Positions 28,511 through 37,127 of a DNA stretch of 64,000 nucleotides are shown in pieces (position 1 is the first letter of the stretch; the number at the start of each line of letters is the position of its first letter). The notes beneath the pieces were generated by a model. It searched no databases, was not told where the DNA came from, and saw only the letters and a list, made by a program, of their open reading frames with translations. Source of the stretch: Salpingoeca rosetta (lineage: Eukaryota; Protista; Choanoflagellata); the NCBI GenBank assembly GCA_033442325.1, contig JAWQFM010000013.1, positions 646,642 through 710,641 on the forward strand, in the 5' to 3' direction. Made by a program: the position numbers and the translations under genes.

Positions 28511-28789
28511 GAGAGGAACAGCGGAACCTGCCTGTCGCAATCACCCTCGGTTGTTTACAGTGAACCTGAACATTGTTACATGAACATTACATGTCGCACT
28601 GTGTGAATCGCTGGAGGCCCAAATTTTCGACCTCACCCTTTACGCCTGTATGTATTGCATAACACACCCCTAGACCCCTCCCACACGTGTTCAGCAATAA
28701 TCACAATCACATCACATCTGATCAACACGTCGCGAGTTGACGAGTTGATCATTTTTTCGTCCACCACTTCGCTCCTCAAAACACACAGT

Positions 28790-31700
28790 ATGGCAAGCTC
28801 GGAGGTGCAGCAGAGGGCTGCTGCTTTGTGCATGAAGCAGACTGAAGGAGTGCACCACAAGTTCAAGAGGCAATGGTACGACAGCGACTTGAGCGACAGC
28901 AGGAAGACGGGTGCCTTGTTGTTCGACATTGCTTGCCTCCACAATGGGGATGGCATGACCCAGCACGACTTTCAGTGCCTCGCTCGTCCAGATGTTCCGG
29001 CTGCATACCTGGTCATTGGCGTCGACAGCAGCGGCACCGTCGTGGGGTGCGATGAAGCCGAGATGACAGATGGTGCAGTGCTCTCACAATTCCTCAGGTC
29101 ACGCTTGGACCCGTGCCCCGAAGTCACTGTGTACCACACCGTCCTGAAGGACGACAAGCGCGTGTTCTTGGTGGAGATTGCCGTCGACACGTCCATTGGG
29201 CAGCCTGTGCGGGTGTGCTCCAAACAGCATGGCAGTCTTCTCACCCGCAAGCCAGCCCGCGTGAGCGAGGGCAACGCCGACTGCGACGTGGCAAACAGCG
29301 TGTGGCCGTCCATCGTGTCCTTCTTTTGTGACTCTGACGAGCAACAGCAGCTCTACACAGAGTTGCGCGAGCACCTGGAGGAGACGGGGGCAAGCCAGGC
29401 TTCTCCATTCTTCAACGGCGTCCGCCGAGTCCTGATCGCCGACCAGCTGGAGGAGCACCAGGCAGTGTGGCTTGCAGCCATTCCCTGGCACGCGATCATC
29501 TCCTTTGGCGCCAACGATGGGCTGAAGCAGGCCATCCCACAGGTGACTGGTGTGGATGTTGAGGAGTTTGAGCTCGAGGCGTGCTGGAAGAAGCGTGGCG
29601 GGGTTCCCCCAAAGGAGGTTATCCAGAACGCGGCACACGGCAGCACCAGGCTCTTTCTCACAGCACCACTCGACCCGATGGACGACGACACAGGGCGCAT
29701 AGTGGCTCAGGCCTTCCAAAGTGTGCGTGCGTGAGTGCGTGTGTCGATGTGTGTGTGTGTGTGAAGGAGTGTCTGTGTGTGTGTGTGTGTGAAGGAGTGT
29801 CTGTTGACGCGTGTGTCGATGTGTGTGCGTGTGTTAAGGAGTGTCTGTTGACGCGTGTGTCGATATATATGTATATGTGTGTGTGTATGAGTGTCTGTTG
29901 ACGCGTGTGTTGCGTGTGTCGATGTGTGCGTGCATGACGGTGTGGTGTGACATGCTTACATGGAGACATCTTCTCACCACTCTCACCATGCCTGCCCCTC
30001 CCTTCCCCCGTTTCTCTTGCGCCCATATCTGTCCATGGTATTGTCAGGTTTACGACCGGGTTGAGGATGCGATCAACTCAGATGAAGCTTTGCCTGTCGT
30101 CTACGCTGCGGTTCTCAACGGGTTTATGGACAGATTTCTCGAGACGGCATGGCGGCGCATGCTGCAACACAGCAGCTCGCACGTTGTCCTCGTCGGCATT
30201 TCCTCGCAACGTGGTTCTGATCGCGTTTGGCAGGAATTCAACGAACTGAATGTTGTGGACATGTGGCAGTTCTCTTGCACCAATACCGTGCTACCCATGC
30301 TTGCCGACACCATGGGCACAACCACCAGTGACCTCATCATCGACCTCCCCACCCGAGGTACCATCCACAACGAAGACTTGGCCCCGGTGCAGGGTTACCT
30401 GACCTTGATGTACGCTCCTGAGTCCAGCACTACACCCACCGACAACAACCTCTCTCTTCGAGACCTGCAGCTGCGATTCCTGCAAGGCGGCGTGCTCACG
30501 GCACAGCTCTTGCGGCGAGAGAAGCAGGGGGATTCGTGTGTTGTCCGGCGTGACTTCCACGGCATCCTTGCGCGGGAGCTGGAAGACGCCATCGCCAGCG
30601 ACGACAGCTCGCAGCGGATTATTGCGGTGAGCCACGGCCGGACGACCGGCGCCTCGACTGTGGTGCGTCATGTGCTCCTCAACAAGGCCATGGCCAACGC
30701 CGTGACTGCCTTTGAGCTGTACAAGATTCCAAGGAACGAGAAGCAGAGGCGTGCCGTCGTTGCTCTGCTTCAGCTCGTGCACGAGCGCTCCTCGTCCCCC
30801 GTTGTCTGTCTGGTGGACAACGACGACGTCACACCTGGCCAAGTGCTCCAATTTGTGCAGTCGACAGCCCTCCACGACATACCACAGCTCGTGTTTGTGG
30901 TGACCAGCAGGAGGATGCACCGGCGCAAAACCCAGCGTGACCAGCTAGAGCTGCCACAACCCAGCATCGTACCGAGCACGAGGCATCTCCAGCTTGCGGG
31001 GGCCCTCACCGAGAAGGAGATGGAGGGCTTTGAGGCCGTGTTCAGCCACTTCAGTGGCATGTGTCGAGACCATTCTGGCAACAGCAATGGTGGCCGAGAC
31101 GCAGGGTTTCTGTGGGGCTGTGCCCTGATGGCCAACAAAGAGGACGCAGTGCTGGCCCACATCGTCGAGCATGTTGCCTGGCTCCCTGCTGACGAGGCAA
31201 GGGCTCTGCAGGCTGTGGCTGTGACCAGCGGCCTGGCGAACTCGTCCCTTCCGCTCTTTGCTGCTGAGCGGCTTCTCGTTGACCAAGGCGCTGTGGACTG
31301 GCCCTTTCTGCAAGCGAAGCGCTGTGGCTTCACTTGCCTCGTTCGCTTCCACGGCAGCCGGCTATGCGCACCTCTTCCCACTGATTTCGTCTGCCGCAGT
31401 CTCTTCCAGGCGGCGGTTGTTCGCCTGCGCGACGCATCCGTCACTGTGAGCAGCATCACCAGTGCCCTGTGGGATCCAGTCGCCCTCTTCGACACGGTCG
31501 AGCAGCTCTTGTGCATACTCGAGGCAAGTTGCCACAACGATGATACGGTGCAAGAGATCATGCGCCGTTTGTTCGCCGCGACATCCAGCGACCTGCTGCA
31601 CCTCCTCAACCGCGACCAAGGCCAGCAACTGTACGAACTTGCCATCCGCACCAGCCCGAGCAAGCACAAGGCGCACCTGCTGGCCGAGCAGGGTCAACAC

Positions 31701-32882
31701 GTCGCACTGCACAGCGAAGGCAGCATGGCCCTGATTCACATGGCGTATCGCCTTGCAGAGGACGGTGTTGCCCGGGCGACGCAGCAGGGGGCGAGTTTGC
31801 GAACCCTGTCCACCTTGATTGGTATTCGAGCACACGTCTTGAAGGTGATGATCCAGGCGCAGCTGGAAACGGGCGAGTCTCCAAACACCACCCTTGCAGC
31901 TGCACTTGCTGACGCTGAGCATTACTTTCAACGAGACGCGGATCACGACAACACGCAACTGGCGGTGGCACTGTGCACAATGGCCATCGATGTTGCCAAG
32001 CACATGGAATCGGCCGACCCCATGCGCGACATGGCGCTCAATGCAGCCCTACACTGGGCATCCCAACTGCAGTTGTGCATTACCAGCAATCGCGCAGAGG
32101 ATCCGGAGAAGGCCAGGGAAAAGCTCCGCACAATCTGGGCGGCACTAGAGTCTCTGCGTCCTCCTCCCCAGCGCAGCGTGCTGCAGAAAGCGGTGGCCGA
32201 TGCTGAGCATGATGCTGACGATGAGGACAACATCGACGTTGATGAGGCGCTGCTGTCTTCGGCGCCGCAGCTGCGCCAGTCTTCATGGCAAACCGTGAAC
32301 CAGGGCGACGCCACGATCATCTTCCGCTGCCTGACACAGCTCCTGAAGCGACGGTCCAAGATTGCTTCGTTCTACCACGTCCAAGAATGGATCCATGCTG
32401 CTGTGGCGTGTGATGACACGCAGATGCCCCTTCACGCGATTGCGCAGTCTGAATGGTACCGATGGGTCGTACAGCAAGTCGACCGCGGGCAGCTGCAGGT
32501 TCATGGCCGAGGCACCGTGTGGGCGCTGTGGCAACAGTGGCTCCTGACGGTGGCAGTGCTGTCTGGAGTGAACACCAGAATCGACGGTCGCACATCGGCT
32601 GACACCCCGCTGTGGTATCTGCAGACCAGAATGGGCGGCGAAGCCATGATCAGCGACATCCGCATGACGAAACCCGAGCACCCGTCTACTGGCGAGCTTG
32701 ACAGAGAGTGCAATGTGCGGGTGAGAGTGCATGGCAGAGACCTCGTCGTTCCGTTTCTCAACCCACCGACCCTTGAGCGTCTTGCAGCAAACATCCGAGT
32801 CCGCCCTTTTCTTCCTACACAAGTGCGCGTGTTCTTGGTCGTCAAACGCGCCAGCCTCTACGCCAAGTTGGAGAATCCTTGA
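28790..32882 (+). CDS. SAMD9-like protein: AlbA/Schlafen, SIR2-like, STAND-type P-loop NTPase, helical/TPR, putative OB-fold; 2 exons (28790-29722, 30048-32882), ~1255 aa
   Basis: AlbA: IACLHN...YLVIGVDSSGTVVG...LRSRLDP...VFLVEI. SIR2-like: LAAIPWHAIISF. Then RFLQGG, VVRRD, Walker-A-like HGRTTGASTVVRHVL, Walker-B PVVCLVDN and LTEKEMEGF, in the motif order recalled for SAMD9. Phase-0 GT-AG intron. Confidence 0.75.
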
Positions 32883-33199
32883 CACGGGCGAGCGGGCATA
32901 GCGATGATTACGCTGGACATGTACATGTGCATGTGTGTGTGCGTGTGCGTGCATGTGTGTGTGCGTGTGCGTGCGGTGAGTGTGTGTGTATGTGTGCGCG
33001 TGTGTGTGGGTGTGTGTGGGTGTGAAGAAGCTACTGTGCACGCACACTCTCCTCGCCACCATAGCAATGAGTCCAGAAGGATCTGTGGTGTATTAAGGGA
33101 TAGGGGTTATGTGCGCATATGCGTCAACAGGTCACGACAAGAAGTACACCGGCGTAAGGGCAACGACGAAATGTCACCACAACCTCACACACACACACA

Positions 33200-33277
33200 C
33201 ACAGACACACACAGACACACAGACACACAGACACACAGACACACAGACACACAGACACACAGACACACAGACACACA

Positions 33278-33755: not shown

Positions 33756-36700
33756 CTAAACATTTGTGCACTTGGCACCGGCACATCTGCCCCTCCGCCA
33801 TTGTGCGCACTTGTCGACACCAACGGTGTGATCATGATGTTCGCCACTCAGGTCACCATCGTTGGCGTGTGCATCGGCGCGATAGGAGAATTCAACCAAG
33901 CCCTCGCAGTCGCGGTACTTGCGACGATGCAGGTCGAGCTGTGTACGCGAGCCGGGCGTTGGTGGCGGCCGCGGCGGCGGTACATGGTTCGAGCTGCCAA
34001 ACACATCCTCAAGCGGCATCGGACCGAGCGCACGCGCGCACACCCCAAAGCGATCCCACCACCGCTTCCACGTCTTGCTGTTTGGTGTCTCTGTAGGCGC
34101 TGTTGGCGTGTGGTAGTGCGGGCTTTGCTGGCGACCGGCACCGCCACCATCATGCACAGCAATGCCACCGTCAGCGTCGTGTTGATGTTGGGGAGCACAG
34201 GGATCCACCTGGTTTCCATCGCGGTCCCGGTTGACACGGGAAGCAGTGAAGGACAACAGGCGACCATTGTTGAGGTGGCAAATACTGCCGCTGGTGACCG
34301 TGGGTAGCAAGGAGCCAAGGAGCCCGCTTCCCTTGATTGGCGTCTCTGAAGGGGCACCACCACGGAGGTCATCCGACTGGGATCCGCGCGTGTGCGTGCT
34401 TGTCGGCTGTGTTGGCGAACCGCTGCCGTAAGCACCACGCCTTGCCTCACGCCGCCCGCCGCGTATGGCCAACACCCGGGCTGCGCGGTCGTCGTCGTTG
34501 AAGATGCTGCTGCTACTGCTGTTGCACTTGTTGTGGGTGCGGGATAAGGTGTTGTGGCCGTTACTGAAGCTGGTGCGTTGGCGTAGCTCCTTCTTCTCCA
34601 TGAAAACATCATGATGATCATCGGCGTCACCGCGACCGTAGACATCATCGCCATCATACCCACCAGCACGATTGATATTGCCAGCATCACCACCAAGCTC
34701 GCCAAGACCGTCAACACCGGCCTGCACAGGCGACGTGCTCACGGCATTCGGTGTGCTCGAGACAACCTGTGCATGGCTGGCCAAGATGCGACCCCTGCTC
34801 CCGCCACTCCCAGTGCCGACGCCACCCGCGGTGGTTGGCAATGGCGATGAATGCGACGCGCCAACAGCGCTGCCGCGGTCATGCACACCGCTGCCTCCGC
34901 TCCCGGTGTTGGGACTGACGCTGGTGTTGTTGGGCGCGTGCGCTTGCGCTTGTGGGATGGCACGTTCAACGAGTGGTGCTCTTCGGTGTCGCATTGGGCG
35001 CGGCGTTCGTGGGCGATCTGCCACACCACCACTCGCATGCCCGTGCTTCCCTCTTCGCCCCCACCTCCCATGTTCACCATTACCATCACACTCGTCGTCA
35101 TCATCACCACCATCAGCATCGTCACCAGCAGCACGCGGTGGTTGCGTTATTTGATGAGTTGCCTTTCCAGGCGCCCCCGAGCGTTTGCAGGCAGGCACGT
35201 AGCGTCGTGGCAACGACAACGATGATGAGGCTGACAGTGCTGCTGCTGCTGTGAATGGTGGGGACGGTGACGGCGGCGAGCGCTTTGCCTGCTTCTGGTG
35301 CGTGCATGTGTGGCTGCCGGCTGCTGTTGCCGTGCGGCGTGCGCTGCTGTGGCCAAGATGGCTGTGAGCGTGCTGGACATGGCGCACACCCCCATTCCCT
35401 TCATCATCGGCGTTACTCTCTTCACCGCCATAACCTTCCTCCTCCTCCTCACCATCATCATCAAGAACATCCTCAGCAACAACGTGGTTGGTATTATCAT
35501 TATCGCAGTCATCATCACCATCATCATCGTCATCATCGTCATCATCACCATCGTCATCGTCATCATCATAGCCGTTGCTGTTGTTGTTGGTACGATGGCG
35601 GCTGCGAGCGGGGTGTCCACCACGGTCATCCGTTTGCAGTTCGGACAGGCGGAGGGCACGATGCTCACGCCTCCCGTGACGCTTCTTCTTGCTGCGGGTG
35701 GTGGTGGTGGTGGTGGCGCTGTTGTCGTCACGATACTGCCGCGTGTTCATGAGAAGCTGGCCGTCGCGCTTGCCCTGTTGCCACGCTGTTGTGTCTGCAC
35801 ATCCCTGGCAGCGGTGGCTGGGTGCGCCTGGTGGGTGCACCTCGGAGCTCCCGTCCCTGCGCACAACAACATGGTCCCACTGCAGCTGCGGCGTCGGGCA
35901 CGACGGCTCATGCGCGTGCACGGCGCGGTCGAGGAGGCGGTGCATGGTGTCGTAGTGTGGAAGCTCGGCATACGCAAGCCCGTCGACGATGTTGGCGATG
36001 GCCAGGAACGATGTGGGGAACTTGCGCAGCAGCTCCTTCCACGTGTAGCGCTTCTTGCACTCGAGCACCTCCTGCTTGCCCTTGAGCTCGCGCCAGGGGA
36101 GGCGGCCAACGTGCATCTCAATCAGTGAGTACAGCCAGCTGGCAAGGTCGTCGCGCGGGCTCTGGCTGAAGCCGCTCTGCGAGTTGATGGACCCGTATCG
36201 GGTGGTGCCGACAAACGACGCGGTATTGCTCTCTGGTTTGGGCGGCGTGGTGGCTGCATCGTTCTCGCGGAAGAAGCGCGCCAGCCCAAAGTCGATGGCA
36301 AACACGCGGTTCCACTCGCTGTTGATGCCAACAGCAAAGTTGCCGGCCTTGACGTCCCGGTGCACGATGCCGCGGCGGTGGAGGTCTTCAAGCGCCCGCA
36401 GCATGTCGCGTGCAACGTGCACGGTGGTGGGCATGTCGAACGCCTGCCCTCTGGCCTTCTTGCGGAGGGTGCTGACGTTCCTGCCAAGCAGCTGCATGCC
36501 AATGTAGTGCGCGTTCCTCTGCGTGCCGCGGAAGTACAGGCGGGGCACGTGCGCCGATGCGTTCGCGGCCTTGTACACGCGGTATTCGTGCTCCAGGTGG
36601 CACGTGCGGCCTTTGTAGTTTGCCTCCATCTTGATGGCGATGTTCTGCGGTTGCCGCGCCCGCACGCCCGTCGATGCACCAGCAGGTAACGACACGGCCG

Positions 36701-37127
36701 TAGTGGTGGTGGATGCGGTGGTTGAGGCAGCCTGTGAGACCGTGGCGGATGACGGCAGCGATGCGTTCAAGGCAGCAGCAGAGCCAGAGAGCGTCGCGTG
36801 CCCGCTGTCGTCGTTTTCATCTGTGGGTGCTGTACCGATTCGGTGGCACTGGTAAACGCGTCCGTAACCGCCCGATCCGAGCTCCTGGTACACTTGCCAC
36901 TTCCCGTGCCCTTCCACCTCCAGAACATGGCCAATGGCGAACTTGACGTCGGATCGCTTGGCCTGTCGCTTCTGCTGCTGCGTTTGCTGTTGCTGTGGTT
37001 GCTGTGGTTGCGGTTGTTGTTGCTGCTGTGGTTGTGGCTGACGATTTCGAGCGGGCTCGTTCTCGCTCACGCTATCACGGACGTTGGTGGCCCGATTTCT
37101 TCTCTGGTGTGCCATTGCCGGGTTCAT
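33756..37127 (-). CDS. CK1-group kinase, tau-tubulin kinase (TTBK)-like, single long exon with a disordered C-terminal tail
   Basis: LGSGGYGRVY, IAIKME, MQLLGRN, HRDVKAGNFA, IDFGLAR, FVGTTRYGSIN, RDDLASWLY and GRLPWRELKGKQEV. Confidence 0.88.
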   Translation of the reverse strand: MNPAMAHQRRNRATNVRDSVSENEPARNRQPQPQQQQQPQPQQPQQQQTQQQKRQAKRSDVKFAIGHVLEVEGHGKWQVYQELGSGGYGRVYQCHRIGTAPTDENDDSGHATLSGSAAALNASLPSSATVSQAASTTASTTTTAVSLPAGASTGVRARQPQNIAIKMEANYKGRTCHLEHEYRVYKAANASAHVPRLYFRGTQRNAHYIGMQLLGRNVSTLRKKARGQAFDMPTTVHVARDMLRALEDLHRRGIVHRDVKAGNFAVGINSEWNRVFAIDFGLARFFRENDAATTPPKPESNTASFVGTTRYGSINSQSGFSQSPRDDLASWLYSLIEMHVGRLPWRELKGKQEVLECKKRYTWKELLRKFPTSFLAIANIVDGLAYAELPHYDTMHRLLDRAVHAHEPSCPTPQLQWDHVVVRRDGSSEVHPPGAPSHRCQGCADTTAWQQGKRDGQLLMNTRQYRDDNSATTTTTTRSKKKRHGRREHRALRLSELQTDDRGGHPARSRHRTNNNSNGYDDDDDDGDDDDDDDDDGDDDCDNDNTNHVVAEDVLDDDGEEEEEGYGGEESNADDEGNGGVRHVQHAHSHLGHSSARRTATAAGSHTCTHQKQAKRSPPSPSPPFTAAAALSASSSLSLPRRYVPACKRSGAPGKATHQITQPPRAAGDDADGGDDDDECDGNGEHGRWGRRGKHGHASGGVADRPRTPRPMRHRRAPLVERAIPQAQAHAPNNTSVSPNTGSGGSGVHDRGSAVGASHSSPLPTTAGGVGTGSGGSRGRILASHAQVVSSTPNAVSTSPVQAGVDGLGELGGDAGNINRAGGYDGDDVYGRGDADDHHDVFMEKKELRQRTSFSNGHNTLSRTHNKCNSSSSSIFNDDDRAARVLAIRGGRREARRGAYGSGSPTQPTSTHTRGSQSDDLRGGAPSETPIKGSGLLGSLLPTVTSGSICHLNNGRLLSFTASRVNRDRDGNQVDPCAPQHQHDADGGIAVHDGGGAGRQQSPHYHTPTAPTETPNSKTWKRWWDRFGVCARALGPMPLEDVFGSSNHVPPPRPPPTPGSRTQLDLHRRKYRDCEGLVEFSYRADAHANDGDLSGEHHDHTVGVDKCAQWRRGRCAGAKCTNV

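Follow-up and report, generated by a model that had tools for sequence, protein, structure and literature searches.

A SAMD9-like STAND protein in the choanoflagellate Salpingoeca rosetta

Gene PTSG_05554 of Salpingoeca rosetta was analysed within a 64,000-nucleotide (nt) stretch of contig JAWQFM010000013.1, here called the window, and all coordinates are window positions. SAMD9 and SAMD9L are poxvirus and lentivirus restriction factors with tRNA-Phe anticodon nuclease activity, and both are human disease genes. PTSG_05554 (P0001), annotated as a "hypothetical protein", is in all likelihood a genuine, expressed, single-copy eukaryotic STAND protein of the SAMD9 family. It is laid out as an AlbA_2 domain, a probably lid-less SIR2-like domain, a nucleotide-binding oligomerisation domain (NOD) whose Walker A motif lacks the lysine, TPR repeats and an OB-like barrel, with no SAM domain. 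Human SAMD9 was the best or sole significant solved match for each part from the SIR2-like domain onwards.

Gene model and transcript

Two long open reading frames (ORFs) lie in this region on the plus strand, in different reading frames and with a GT-rich stretch between them. Spliced translation of 28790-29722 and 30048-32879 gave a protein of 1255 amino acids (aa) that was letter-for-letter identical to PTSG_05554. The transcription unit comprises:

28640..28789, plus strand: 5' untranslated region with approximate transcript start (stranded RNA depth starts in bin 28642-28812)
28790..29722, plus strand: coding exon 1 (ATG at 28790), aa 1-311, AlbA_2 domain and first half of the SIR2-like domain
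29723..30047, plus strand: the gene's single intron, 325 nt, GT...AG, donor GTGCGT at 29723
30048..32882, plus strand: coding exon 2 (from the spliced translation), aa 312-1255 and stop codon
32883..33260, plus strand: approximate 3' untranslated region (RNA depth up to bin 33088-33258, zero past it)

The transcript and its splice junction are backed by stranded RNA reads. Reads from two 2026 runs spanned approximately 28640-33260 in the orientation of a plus-strand mRNA, and the end of exon 1 overhung at 30048 in 9 and 15 reads. An older spliced contig (X13, record 3) also bridges 29718 to 30048. Appreciable read depth was seen within the intron, which suggests partial retention or pre-mRNA. 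The intron is made up of a GT microsatellite and of 28- and 44-nt tandem repeats in about 2-3 copies.

A paralogue count had been proposed in an earlier note on this DNA, made from the sequence alone; PTSG_05554 proved to be single-copy in the S. rosetta genome, where one marginal 65-aa match was found besides the gene itself. The same note had placed the gene in a unicellular holozoan, in agreement with its choanoflagellate source, and had described the protein as having no SAM domain. The latter was borne out: the AlbA domain begins approximately 20 residues past Met1, Pfam gave no SAM match, and a search upstream of 28790 found no in-frame ATG.

Sequence link to SAMD9 from the NOD to TPR1

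Profile A5, a 15-row alignment of protist sequences only, was searched against all Protein Data Bank (PDB) chain sequences. The six top sequences were all human SAMD9 cryo-EM constructs, with expectation values (E) of 2.8e-16 to 1.2e-15 and approximately 61-61.8 bits. The next match followed at E 0.08, and no other STAND protein was returned at E up to 10. The SAMD9-like resemblance seen earlier by eye in the motifs thus extends well beyond chance. Profile positions 435-825 (approximately 390) were aligned to SAMD9 residues 698-1151 (approximate), with VVRRD paired with SAMD9 FVKRD. Features of this part are:

30519..31889, plus strand: SAMD9-similar region, approximately aa 469-925, covering the end of SLI, NBD, HD1, WHD, HD2 and TPR1 (A5 profile match)
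30633..30659, plus strand: lysine-less Walker A HGRTTGAST (aa 507-515), H507/G512/A513/S514/T515 pairing with SAMD9 H737/G742/G743/T744/T745
30798..30821, plus strand: Walker B PVVCLVDN (aa 562-569), pairing with PVLLLVD799; D568 equals SAMD9 D799, N569 replaces D800
30912..30914, plus strand: probable sensor-1 arginine R600, matching SAMD9 R837 (reading of the A5 alignment)

All motifs quoted in the earlier note were found in the order given there, at the translated positions of ACLHN (aa 48), LVIGVD (aa 74), IPWHAIISF (aa 231), FLQGG (aa 455) and VRRD (aa 477), followed by both Walker motifs, A and B, listed above. The Walker A motif, which had been called atypical, matches the signature of the SAMD9 family (PMC5445408, PMC13600222). 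In the SAMD9 structure, glycine replaces the Walker A lysine and the upstream H737 substitutes for it (PMC13600222), and GG[T/S] in place of GK[T/S] together with an upstream histidine was described as a family hallmark by Mekhedov et al. 2017 (PMC5445408), where SAM was placed outside the family core. The upstream histidine of PTSG_05554 has the same spacing as in SAMD9 (H737-HPGC-G742-G-T744-T745). H-x4-G-x-[ST]-[ST] is kept in all protist members; the relatives carry GGS, GGST or GCT, and S. rosetta G-A-S.

The roles of SAMD9 H737/G742/T744, D799 and R837 have been described (PMC13600222). R600 is the probable equivalent of the sensor-1 residue R837, with the HMMER register off by one residue at this point, and an arginine after this strand is conserved in family members. 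With Asn in place of the second Walker B acid, PTSG_05554 may bind nucleotide and hydrolyse little of it; in SAMD9, D800A weakens the protein.

Single-sequence PDB searches with exon 1, exon 2, P0007 and P0011 gave nothing useful, NCBIfam gave no match, and Pfam gave nothing for aa 150-1255. Protein-language-model neighbours of P0001 and P0011 were chordate SAMD9/9L and bacterial AlbA+nSTAND5 clusters (0.93-0.95), which was taken as a lead only.

SIR2-like domain

A template-free AlphaFold2 (AF2) model of aa 1-500 was made, with a predicted local distance difference test score (pLDDT) of 67.9. It contains:

29348..30314, plus strand: SIR2-like Rossmann domain, aa 187-400, split by the intron (VIA-align, Foldseek)

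In a Foldseek search of the PDB with this model, the top 7 matches were all SAMD9 (E 3.6e-6 to 4.8e-4), followed by prokaryotic defence SIR2 proteins and then by FAM118B, 3lmm (an AlbA_2 protein) and 9o0d (the rabbit SAMD9 tRNase). VIA-align placed aa 187-400 on SAMD9 389-622 (Z 14.6; root-mean-square deviation (rmsd) 3.4 A over 202 residues), and the top 5 rows were SAMD9; prokaryotic SIR2 proteins gave Z 12.0 (SPARSA), 10.9 (DSR2) and 10.4 (EfAvs5, 9jap). The chain span in these alignments was 234 residues for SAMD9 versus approximately 295 for prokaryotic SIR2, and the short, SAMD9-like span would fit a lid-less SIR2-like domain. A conserved catalytic histidine was not apparent in this domain in the family alignment, so that, by analogy with SAMD9, it is probably a structural module. 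Profile alignment with a bacterial relative (P0034, below) begins at aa 199, in the SIR2-like region.

AlbA_2 domain and its putative active site

The N-terminus of PTSG_05554 has the AlbA_2 fold.

28790..29284, plus strand: AlbA_2/Schlafen-type domain, aa 1 to approximately 165, with E19-x4-K24-F-K26, D46 and G77-V-D79 (Pfam, hhalign, folds)

Pfam PF04326 scored 25.3 bits in PTSG_05554, equal to the cut-off, and 31.5 bits in relative P0006. Alignment of the N-terminus with a bacterial AlbA_2 protein (P0035) by hhalign gave 93.6% and E 2e-7, and an Atlas fold search with the N-terminal part returned AlbA_2 clusters in 10 of 10 rows. An AlbA-only profile gave weak Schlafen matches in the PDB (E 0.09-0.9), confined to the GVD motif; the N-terminal profile A6 gave no match there. 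The PADLOC library returned only a weak N-terminal match, PDC-S50 (E 1.8e-6).

The acids of the SAMD9 tRNase are E184, E196, E218 and D241, and the E196A mutant is inactive (PMC10246899). An alignment of the catalytic acidic residues had been suggested earlier and was made by motif spacing: E19, D46 and D79 appear to be in place, and the remaining acid position appears to be taken by K24. E19 and D79 are kept in S. rosetta, and D46 is present in every family member aligned, not in bacterial P0035. A42 and C49 would stand at the spacing of the tRNA-binding SAMD9 residues K214 and R221, leaving these basic residues unmatched.

TPR repeats and C-terminal barrel

For aa 820-1255, a template-free AF2 model had pLDDT 86.4 and a predicted template modelling score of 0.85. 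The helical repeats and the beta-rich C-terminus that had been read from the letters were both seen in it.

31572..32879, plus strand: TPR-like helical repeats and C-terminal beta-barrel, aa 820-1255 (AF2 model, Foldseek, VIA-align)
32604..32879, plus strand: OB-like beta-barrel, aa 1164-1255 (DSSP; placed by VIA-align where SAMD9 has its OB domain)

SAMD9 was the top Foldseek match (E 4.6e-4). In VIA-align, only SAMD9 covered the whole model (residues 1-436 on 1034-1588; 350-359 aa; Z 14.3 to 11.8 in four entries), and ordinary TPR proteins matched only model residues 1-198 (Z 13-15). The rmsd to SAMD9 was high (8-10 A), as is expected from the hinge between TPR1 and TPR2. Identity between PTSG_05554 and SAMD9 in the structural alignments was approximately 10-14%. 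An Atlas fold search with this model gave generic TPR rows only, at template modelling scores <0.5.

DSSP assigned to model residues 348-433 a strand, three strands, a helix and two strands, and aa 1164-1255 are assigned at fold level, from the model, as a putative OB-like domain. The C-terminal profile searched against the PDB had SAMD9 TPR1 as its top match (E 1.4e-3). After SAMD9, IFIT1 and IFIT5 (E 0.008-0.03) were returned by the protist C-terminal profile (aa 825-970) and by Streptomyces P0033 (aa 1063-1153); this resemblance may be generic TPR similarity only.

The earlier note had staked its reading on AlbA and STAND folds being recovered in this order. The searches above recover, in order, AlbA_2, SIR2-like, SAMD9-type STAND NOD, TPR and beta-barrel.

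Relatives of PTSG_05554

A word-indexed homologue search found two further proteins only, on short ENA metagenome contigs and at 44-47% identity. On both contigs an AlbA exon lies upstream, and an intron falls at precisely the codon boundary seen in PTSG_05554; the two environmental orthologous loci with this intron position are 45-54% identical to the S. rosetta protein. An exhaustive HMMER search with a three-species profile gave 15 matches among 1.84 billion cluster representatives. None of the 15 is clearly bacterial or animal, and no other named choanoflagellate (by our reading, Monosiga included) is among them. One (P0004) is a transcript crossing the exon junction. The 15 include deeper relatives: P0007 and P0012, which share a contig, P0010, which is followed by a further ORF, P0011 and P0015. 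Relatives whose contigs were fetched sit on eukaryote-like contigs. Single-sequence scores of P0001 were 7e-29 against P0007, 4e-19 against P0010 and 3e-11 against P0011, so that within eukaryotes the family is either old or evolving fast. The multi-domain architecture is kept across the family at 21-54% identity.

P0011 (1356 aa) is the most divergent full-length relative and is intronless. Its contig L007 (JGI 3300045922, 13.5 kb, GC 0.655) is compact and holds DIRP, an APE1-like nuclease, other eukaryote-type genes and a weak fungal-type Zn-cluster match, together with a bacterial-type GlyRS approximately 47-51% identical to oomycete and bacterial enzymes. On contig L001, positions 2-91 at the 5' end match protein residues 47-76 on the reverse strand, beside the forward copy. 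The arrangement resembles a terminal inverted duplication, probably an assembly artefact, by which the orthologue's AlbA exon is cut short. A downstream kinase in L006 had seemed to indicate shared synteny, an idea that was dropped because tblastn gave no support.

Neighbouring genes and reference differences

PTSG_05554 is flanked by ordinary eukaryotic genes, and its GC content is 0.59 versus 0.56 for the window. Upstream lies a tRNA (uracil-5)-methyltransferase-like ORF (26247-27617, plus strand; PF05958, E 1.5e-42), and downstream an uninterrupted protein-kinase ORF of 1123 aa (33756-37127, minus strand). Since the kinase frame is uninterrupted as well, intron-poverty is not unique to the SAMD9-like gene locally. 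That the locus is a contaminant or of bacterial origin was rejected on the strength of its intron, its RNA reads and the eukaryotic genes around it.

Seven identical differences from the reference were seen between 28741 and 28899 in RNA reads of 2026 and contigs of 2011 and 2022 (four runs): 28741 C>G, GGA inserted after 28800, 28807 G>C, 28808 C>A, 28818 C>T, 28883 A>T and 28899 G>A. They alter residues 4-37 (one extra residue, Q7K, A10V, S32C and S37N) and leave the E19...K26 motif untouched. The remainder of PTSG_05554 was without differences between the reference and the four runs, so that the reference assembly seems to carry either a local error or a divergent allele at this place.

Proposed function and alternative explanations

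Taken as a whole, SAMD9-family identity together with a sensor-nuclease function is the favoured reading and is moderately probable. For the antiviral, tRNA-cleaving mechanism itself the balance is even. It is built on analogy with SAMD9 (PMC13600222, PMC10246899) and Avs9 (PMC12680541), whose AlbA domains are toxic or nuclease effectors (PMC10246899, PMC12680541). The resting protein would be ATP-bound and closed. A foreign or stress cue, sensed via the TPR-OB or SIR2 region, would open the protein and lead to oligomerisation. The N-terminal AlbA_2 domains, brought together in this way, would cut tRNA or other RNA, and the resulting translation arrest would sacrifice or arrest the infected cell.

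Several points weigh against the sensor-nuclease reading. We know of no virus of S. rosetta. The sequence E19-GVHH-K24-F-K26 has a lysine where the AlbA_2/Schlafen motif E-x4-[E/D]-F-K has an acid, and K24 appears to correspond to SAMD9 E196, by motif spacing and not by superposition. In the L002 orthologue, the closest full-length one, His stands at this position, and five relatives further removed have Asp. In S. rosetta Asn takes the place of the second Walker B acid, which most relatives lack as well, and the WHD histidine is not conserved in our reading of the A5-SAMD9 alignment. The Pfam families nSTAND_NTPase5 (PF25199) and iSirtuin (PF24403) gave no match even at E up to 5; homology with P0034, which bears nSTAND5, emerged only when profiles were compared with each other. 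The N-terminal model is moderately confident, with aa 403-485 poor or unmodelled.

Some of these points also favour a true SAMD9-family homologue whose effector is degenerate or repurposed, an explanation that we consider rather unlikely. The AlbA_2 domain would then bind nucleic acid only, and the protein would serve as a scaffold or regulator in stress, translation control or cell-cycle arrest. Lysine at a position that is Asp in relatives, Glu in canonical AlbA_2 and His in the L002 orthologue would fit such a loss, as would the Asn in Walker B; so would a single-copy gene without expansion, unlike many arms-race immune families, and constitutive transcription in ordinary cultures. However, E19, D46 and D79 are retained, the preservation of the whole architecture over the identity range of the family argues for a maintained regulated-effector logic, and human SAMD9 is likewise constitutively expressed and mostly autoinhibited (PMC13600222). 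That PTSG_05554 is instead some generic protein of STAND/NLR-like type, or an orphan specific to its lineage, with a SAMD9 likeness arising by chance at the level of motifs, is most improbable. Single sequences of P0001, P0007 and P0011 do find nothing in the PDB, and Pfam gives AlbA_2 only, exactly at threshold. Yet the A5 match at E 2.8e-16 is exclusive to SAMD9, although structures of Apaf-1, NLRs (PMC13600222) and EfAvs5 (9jap) exist, template-free models made independently resemble SAMD9 in two more regions, and both proteins have the rare H...G-x-[ST]-T Walker A. A chance likeness is effectively refuted by the profile match and by the structural alignments of the SIR2-like and TPR-OB parts.

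Origin and significance

The deep history of SAMD9/SAMD9L is contested between horizontal transfer into animals (PMC5445408) and convergence with Avs9 (PMC12680541). The family was found in animals and bacteria only by Mekhedov et al. 2017 (PMC5445408), and Legrand et al. 2025 found nothing in plants, fungi, algae or protozoa, relaxed and Avs9-seeded searches included (PMC12680541); a 2026 preprint still terms SAMD9 an animal family. In the searchable full-text literature, no paper links SAMD9 with choanoflagellates, Salpingoeca, Monosiga or Capsaspora, with the exception of one passing co-mention. According to this literature, PTSG_05554 is the first SAMD9-family member in a unicellular eukaryote; the kind of system is not new. 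The bearing on inheritance versus transfer that the earlier note had seen in the gene stands, since no matches in protozoa were reported (PMC12680541). An expressed homologue with the full architecture in the sister group of animals, with divergent relatives on other eukaryotic contigs, breaks the published distribution, and inheritance versus acquisition becomes a question that a phylogeny can answer.

With a chance not far short of even, the complete AlbA_2-SIR2-NOD-TPR-OB sensor-effector predates the choanoflagellate-animal split or arose earlier in eukaryotes, and the protist family is sister to metazoan SAMD9. If so, the system passed to animals by inheritance, and SAM or death-fold domains were added there afterwards. 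The published view of a family of animals and prokaryotes only, which arose in animals by transfer or convergence, would then be revised, and S. rosetta would serve as a tractable organism in which to study trigger and target of the ancestral system.

It is also possible, if on the doubtful side, that the protist family came from bacteria independently of animals, from an Avs9-like or nSTAND5 gene; PTSG_05554 would then be a parallel import and no SAMD9 orthologue, and would say little about pre-animal immunity. Over roughly the NOD-TPR1 stretch, the family profile scores 74.8 bits for Streptomyces P0033, 54.5 for P0034 and 61.4 for SAMD9, and P0032 reaches 89 bits over a longer span that includes the SIR2-like part. 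There are bacterial relatives whose N-terminal domain is a different one, the family is very patchily distributed (the 15 matches in 1.84 billion representatives, with no other named choanoflagellate), and horizontal transfer into animals (PMC5445408) and convergence (PMC12680541) have already been proposed for the family. On the other hand, the exhaustive three-species profile search found no bacterial protein, which puts any transfer far back in time. A spliceosomal intron at a conserved position, a GC content near the window's and deep divergences among the eukaryotes also speak against a recent import; the bacterial relatives found carry TCAD9 and not AlbA_2, and in structure both the SIR2-like and the TPR-OB part match SAMD9 best, though the PDB has no Avs9 structure to set beside them. 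Cross-group single-sequence searches gave no matches except Streptomyces P0033 against SAMD9 (E 1e-3). Profile scores are approximately equal for human SAMD9 and the Streptomyces relatives and are thus uninformative on origin.

PTSG_05554 offers a genetically tractable unicellular system for ancestral sensing, AlbA tRNA cleavage and the regulation of a lysine-less, ATP-locked NOD.

Comparison with known systems

Schlafen proteins share the AlbA_2 core, which is followed in them by SWADL/linker and (in group III) a helicase, where PTSG_05554 has the SIR2-like domain and STAND module. Avs5 (SIR2-STAND), SPARSA, DSR2 and ThsA-like proteins have a SIR2-type Rossmann fold before the STAND module (VIA Z 10.4-12.0). 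The SIR2 domains of Avs5 and of prokaryotic defence proteins are NADases with lid and catalytic residues and come without AlbA_2, whereas the domain of PTSG_05554 is short like that of SAMD9.

Three bacterial proteins with TCAD9 and nSTAND_NTPase5 (P0032, P0033 and P0034, from Streptomyces and a Logan contig) show profile homology extending from the SIR2-like domain across the NOD and into the TPR (E 3e-20 to 6e-13 for a database of 5.8 billion). The hhalign comparison of the protist family with P0034 gave 98.3% and E 2.3e-14 over 593 columns, beginning in the SIR2-like region and ending in the TPR, and the P0034 Walker A "HlagaGGST" has the same lysine-less H-x4-G-G-S-T form. In contrast to PTSG_05554, these proteins are bacterial, are longer (1425-2026 aa) and have TCAD9 in place of AlbA_2 at the N-terminus; a swap of the N-terminal effector is as expected of a modular family.

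Bacterial Avs9 (e.g. Pseudomonas fluorescens A0A7T4VS34; PMC12680541), likened here by its description, has the architecture AlbA_2-SIR2-STAND-TPR-OB without SAM, as does PTSG_05554, and its toxicity needs the AlbA_2 active site (PMC12680541). Avs9 is prokaryotic and is found in defence islands, whereas PTSG_05554 is nuclear, spliced and RNA-supported, with eukaryotic neighbours.

Human SAMD9 and SAMD9L have the same order of AlbA_2, SIR2-like, (SLI/Delta) NOD, TPR and OB as PTSG_05554. SAMD9 differs in its SAM domain and disordered N-terminal segment, both absent from PTSG_05554, and in length (1589 versus 1255 aa). Its Walker A reads G-G-T-T versus G-A-S-T, with D800 versus Asn and, mapped by spacing, E196 versus Lys. 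The host of SAMD9 is an animal, and that of PTSG_05554 a unicellular protist without an interferon system.

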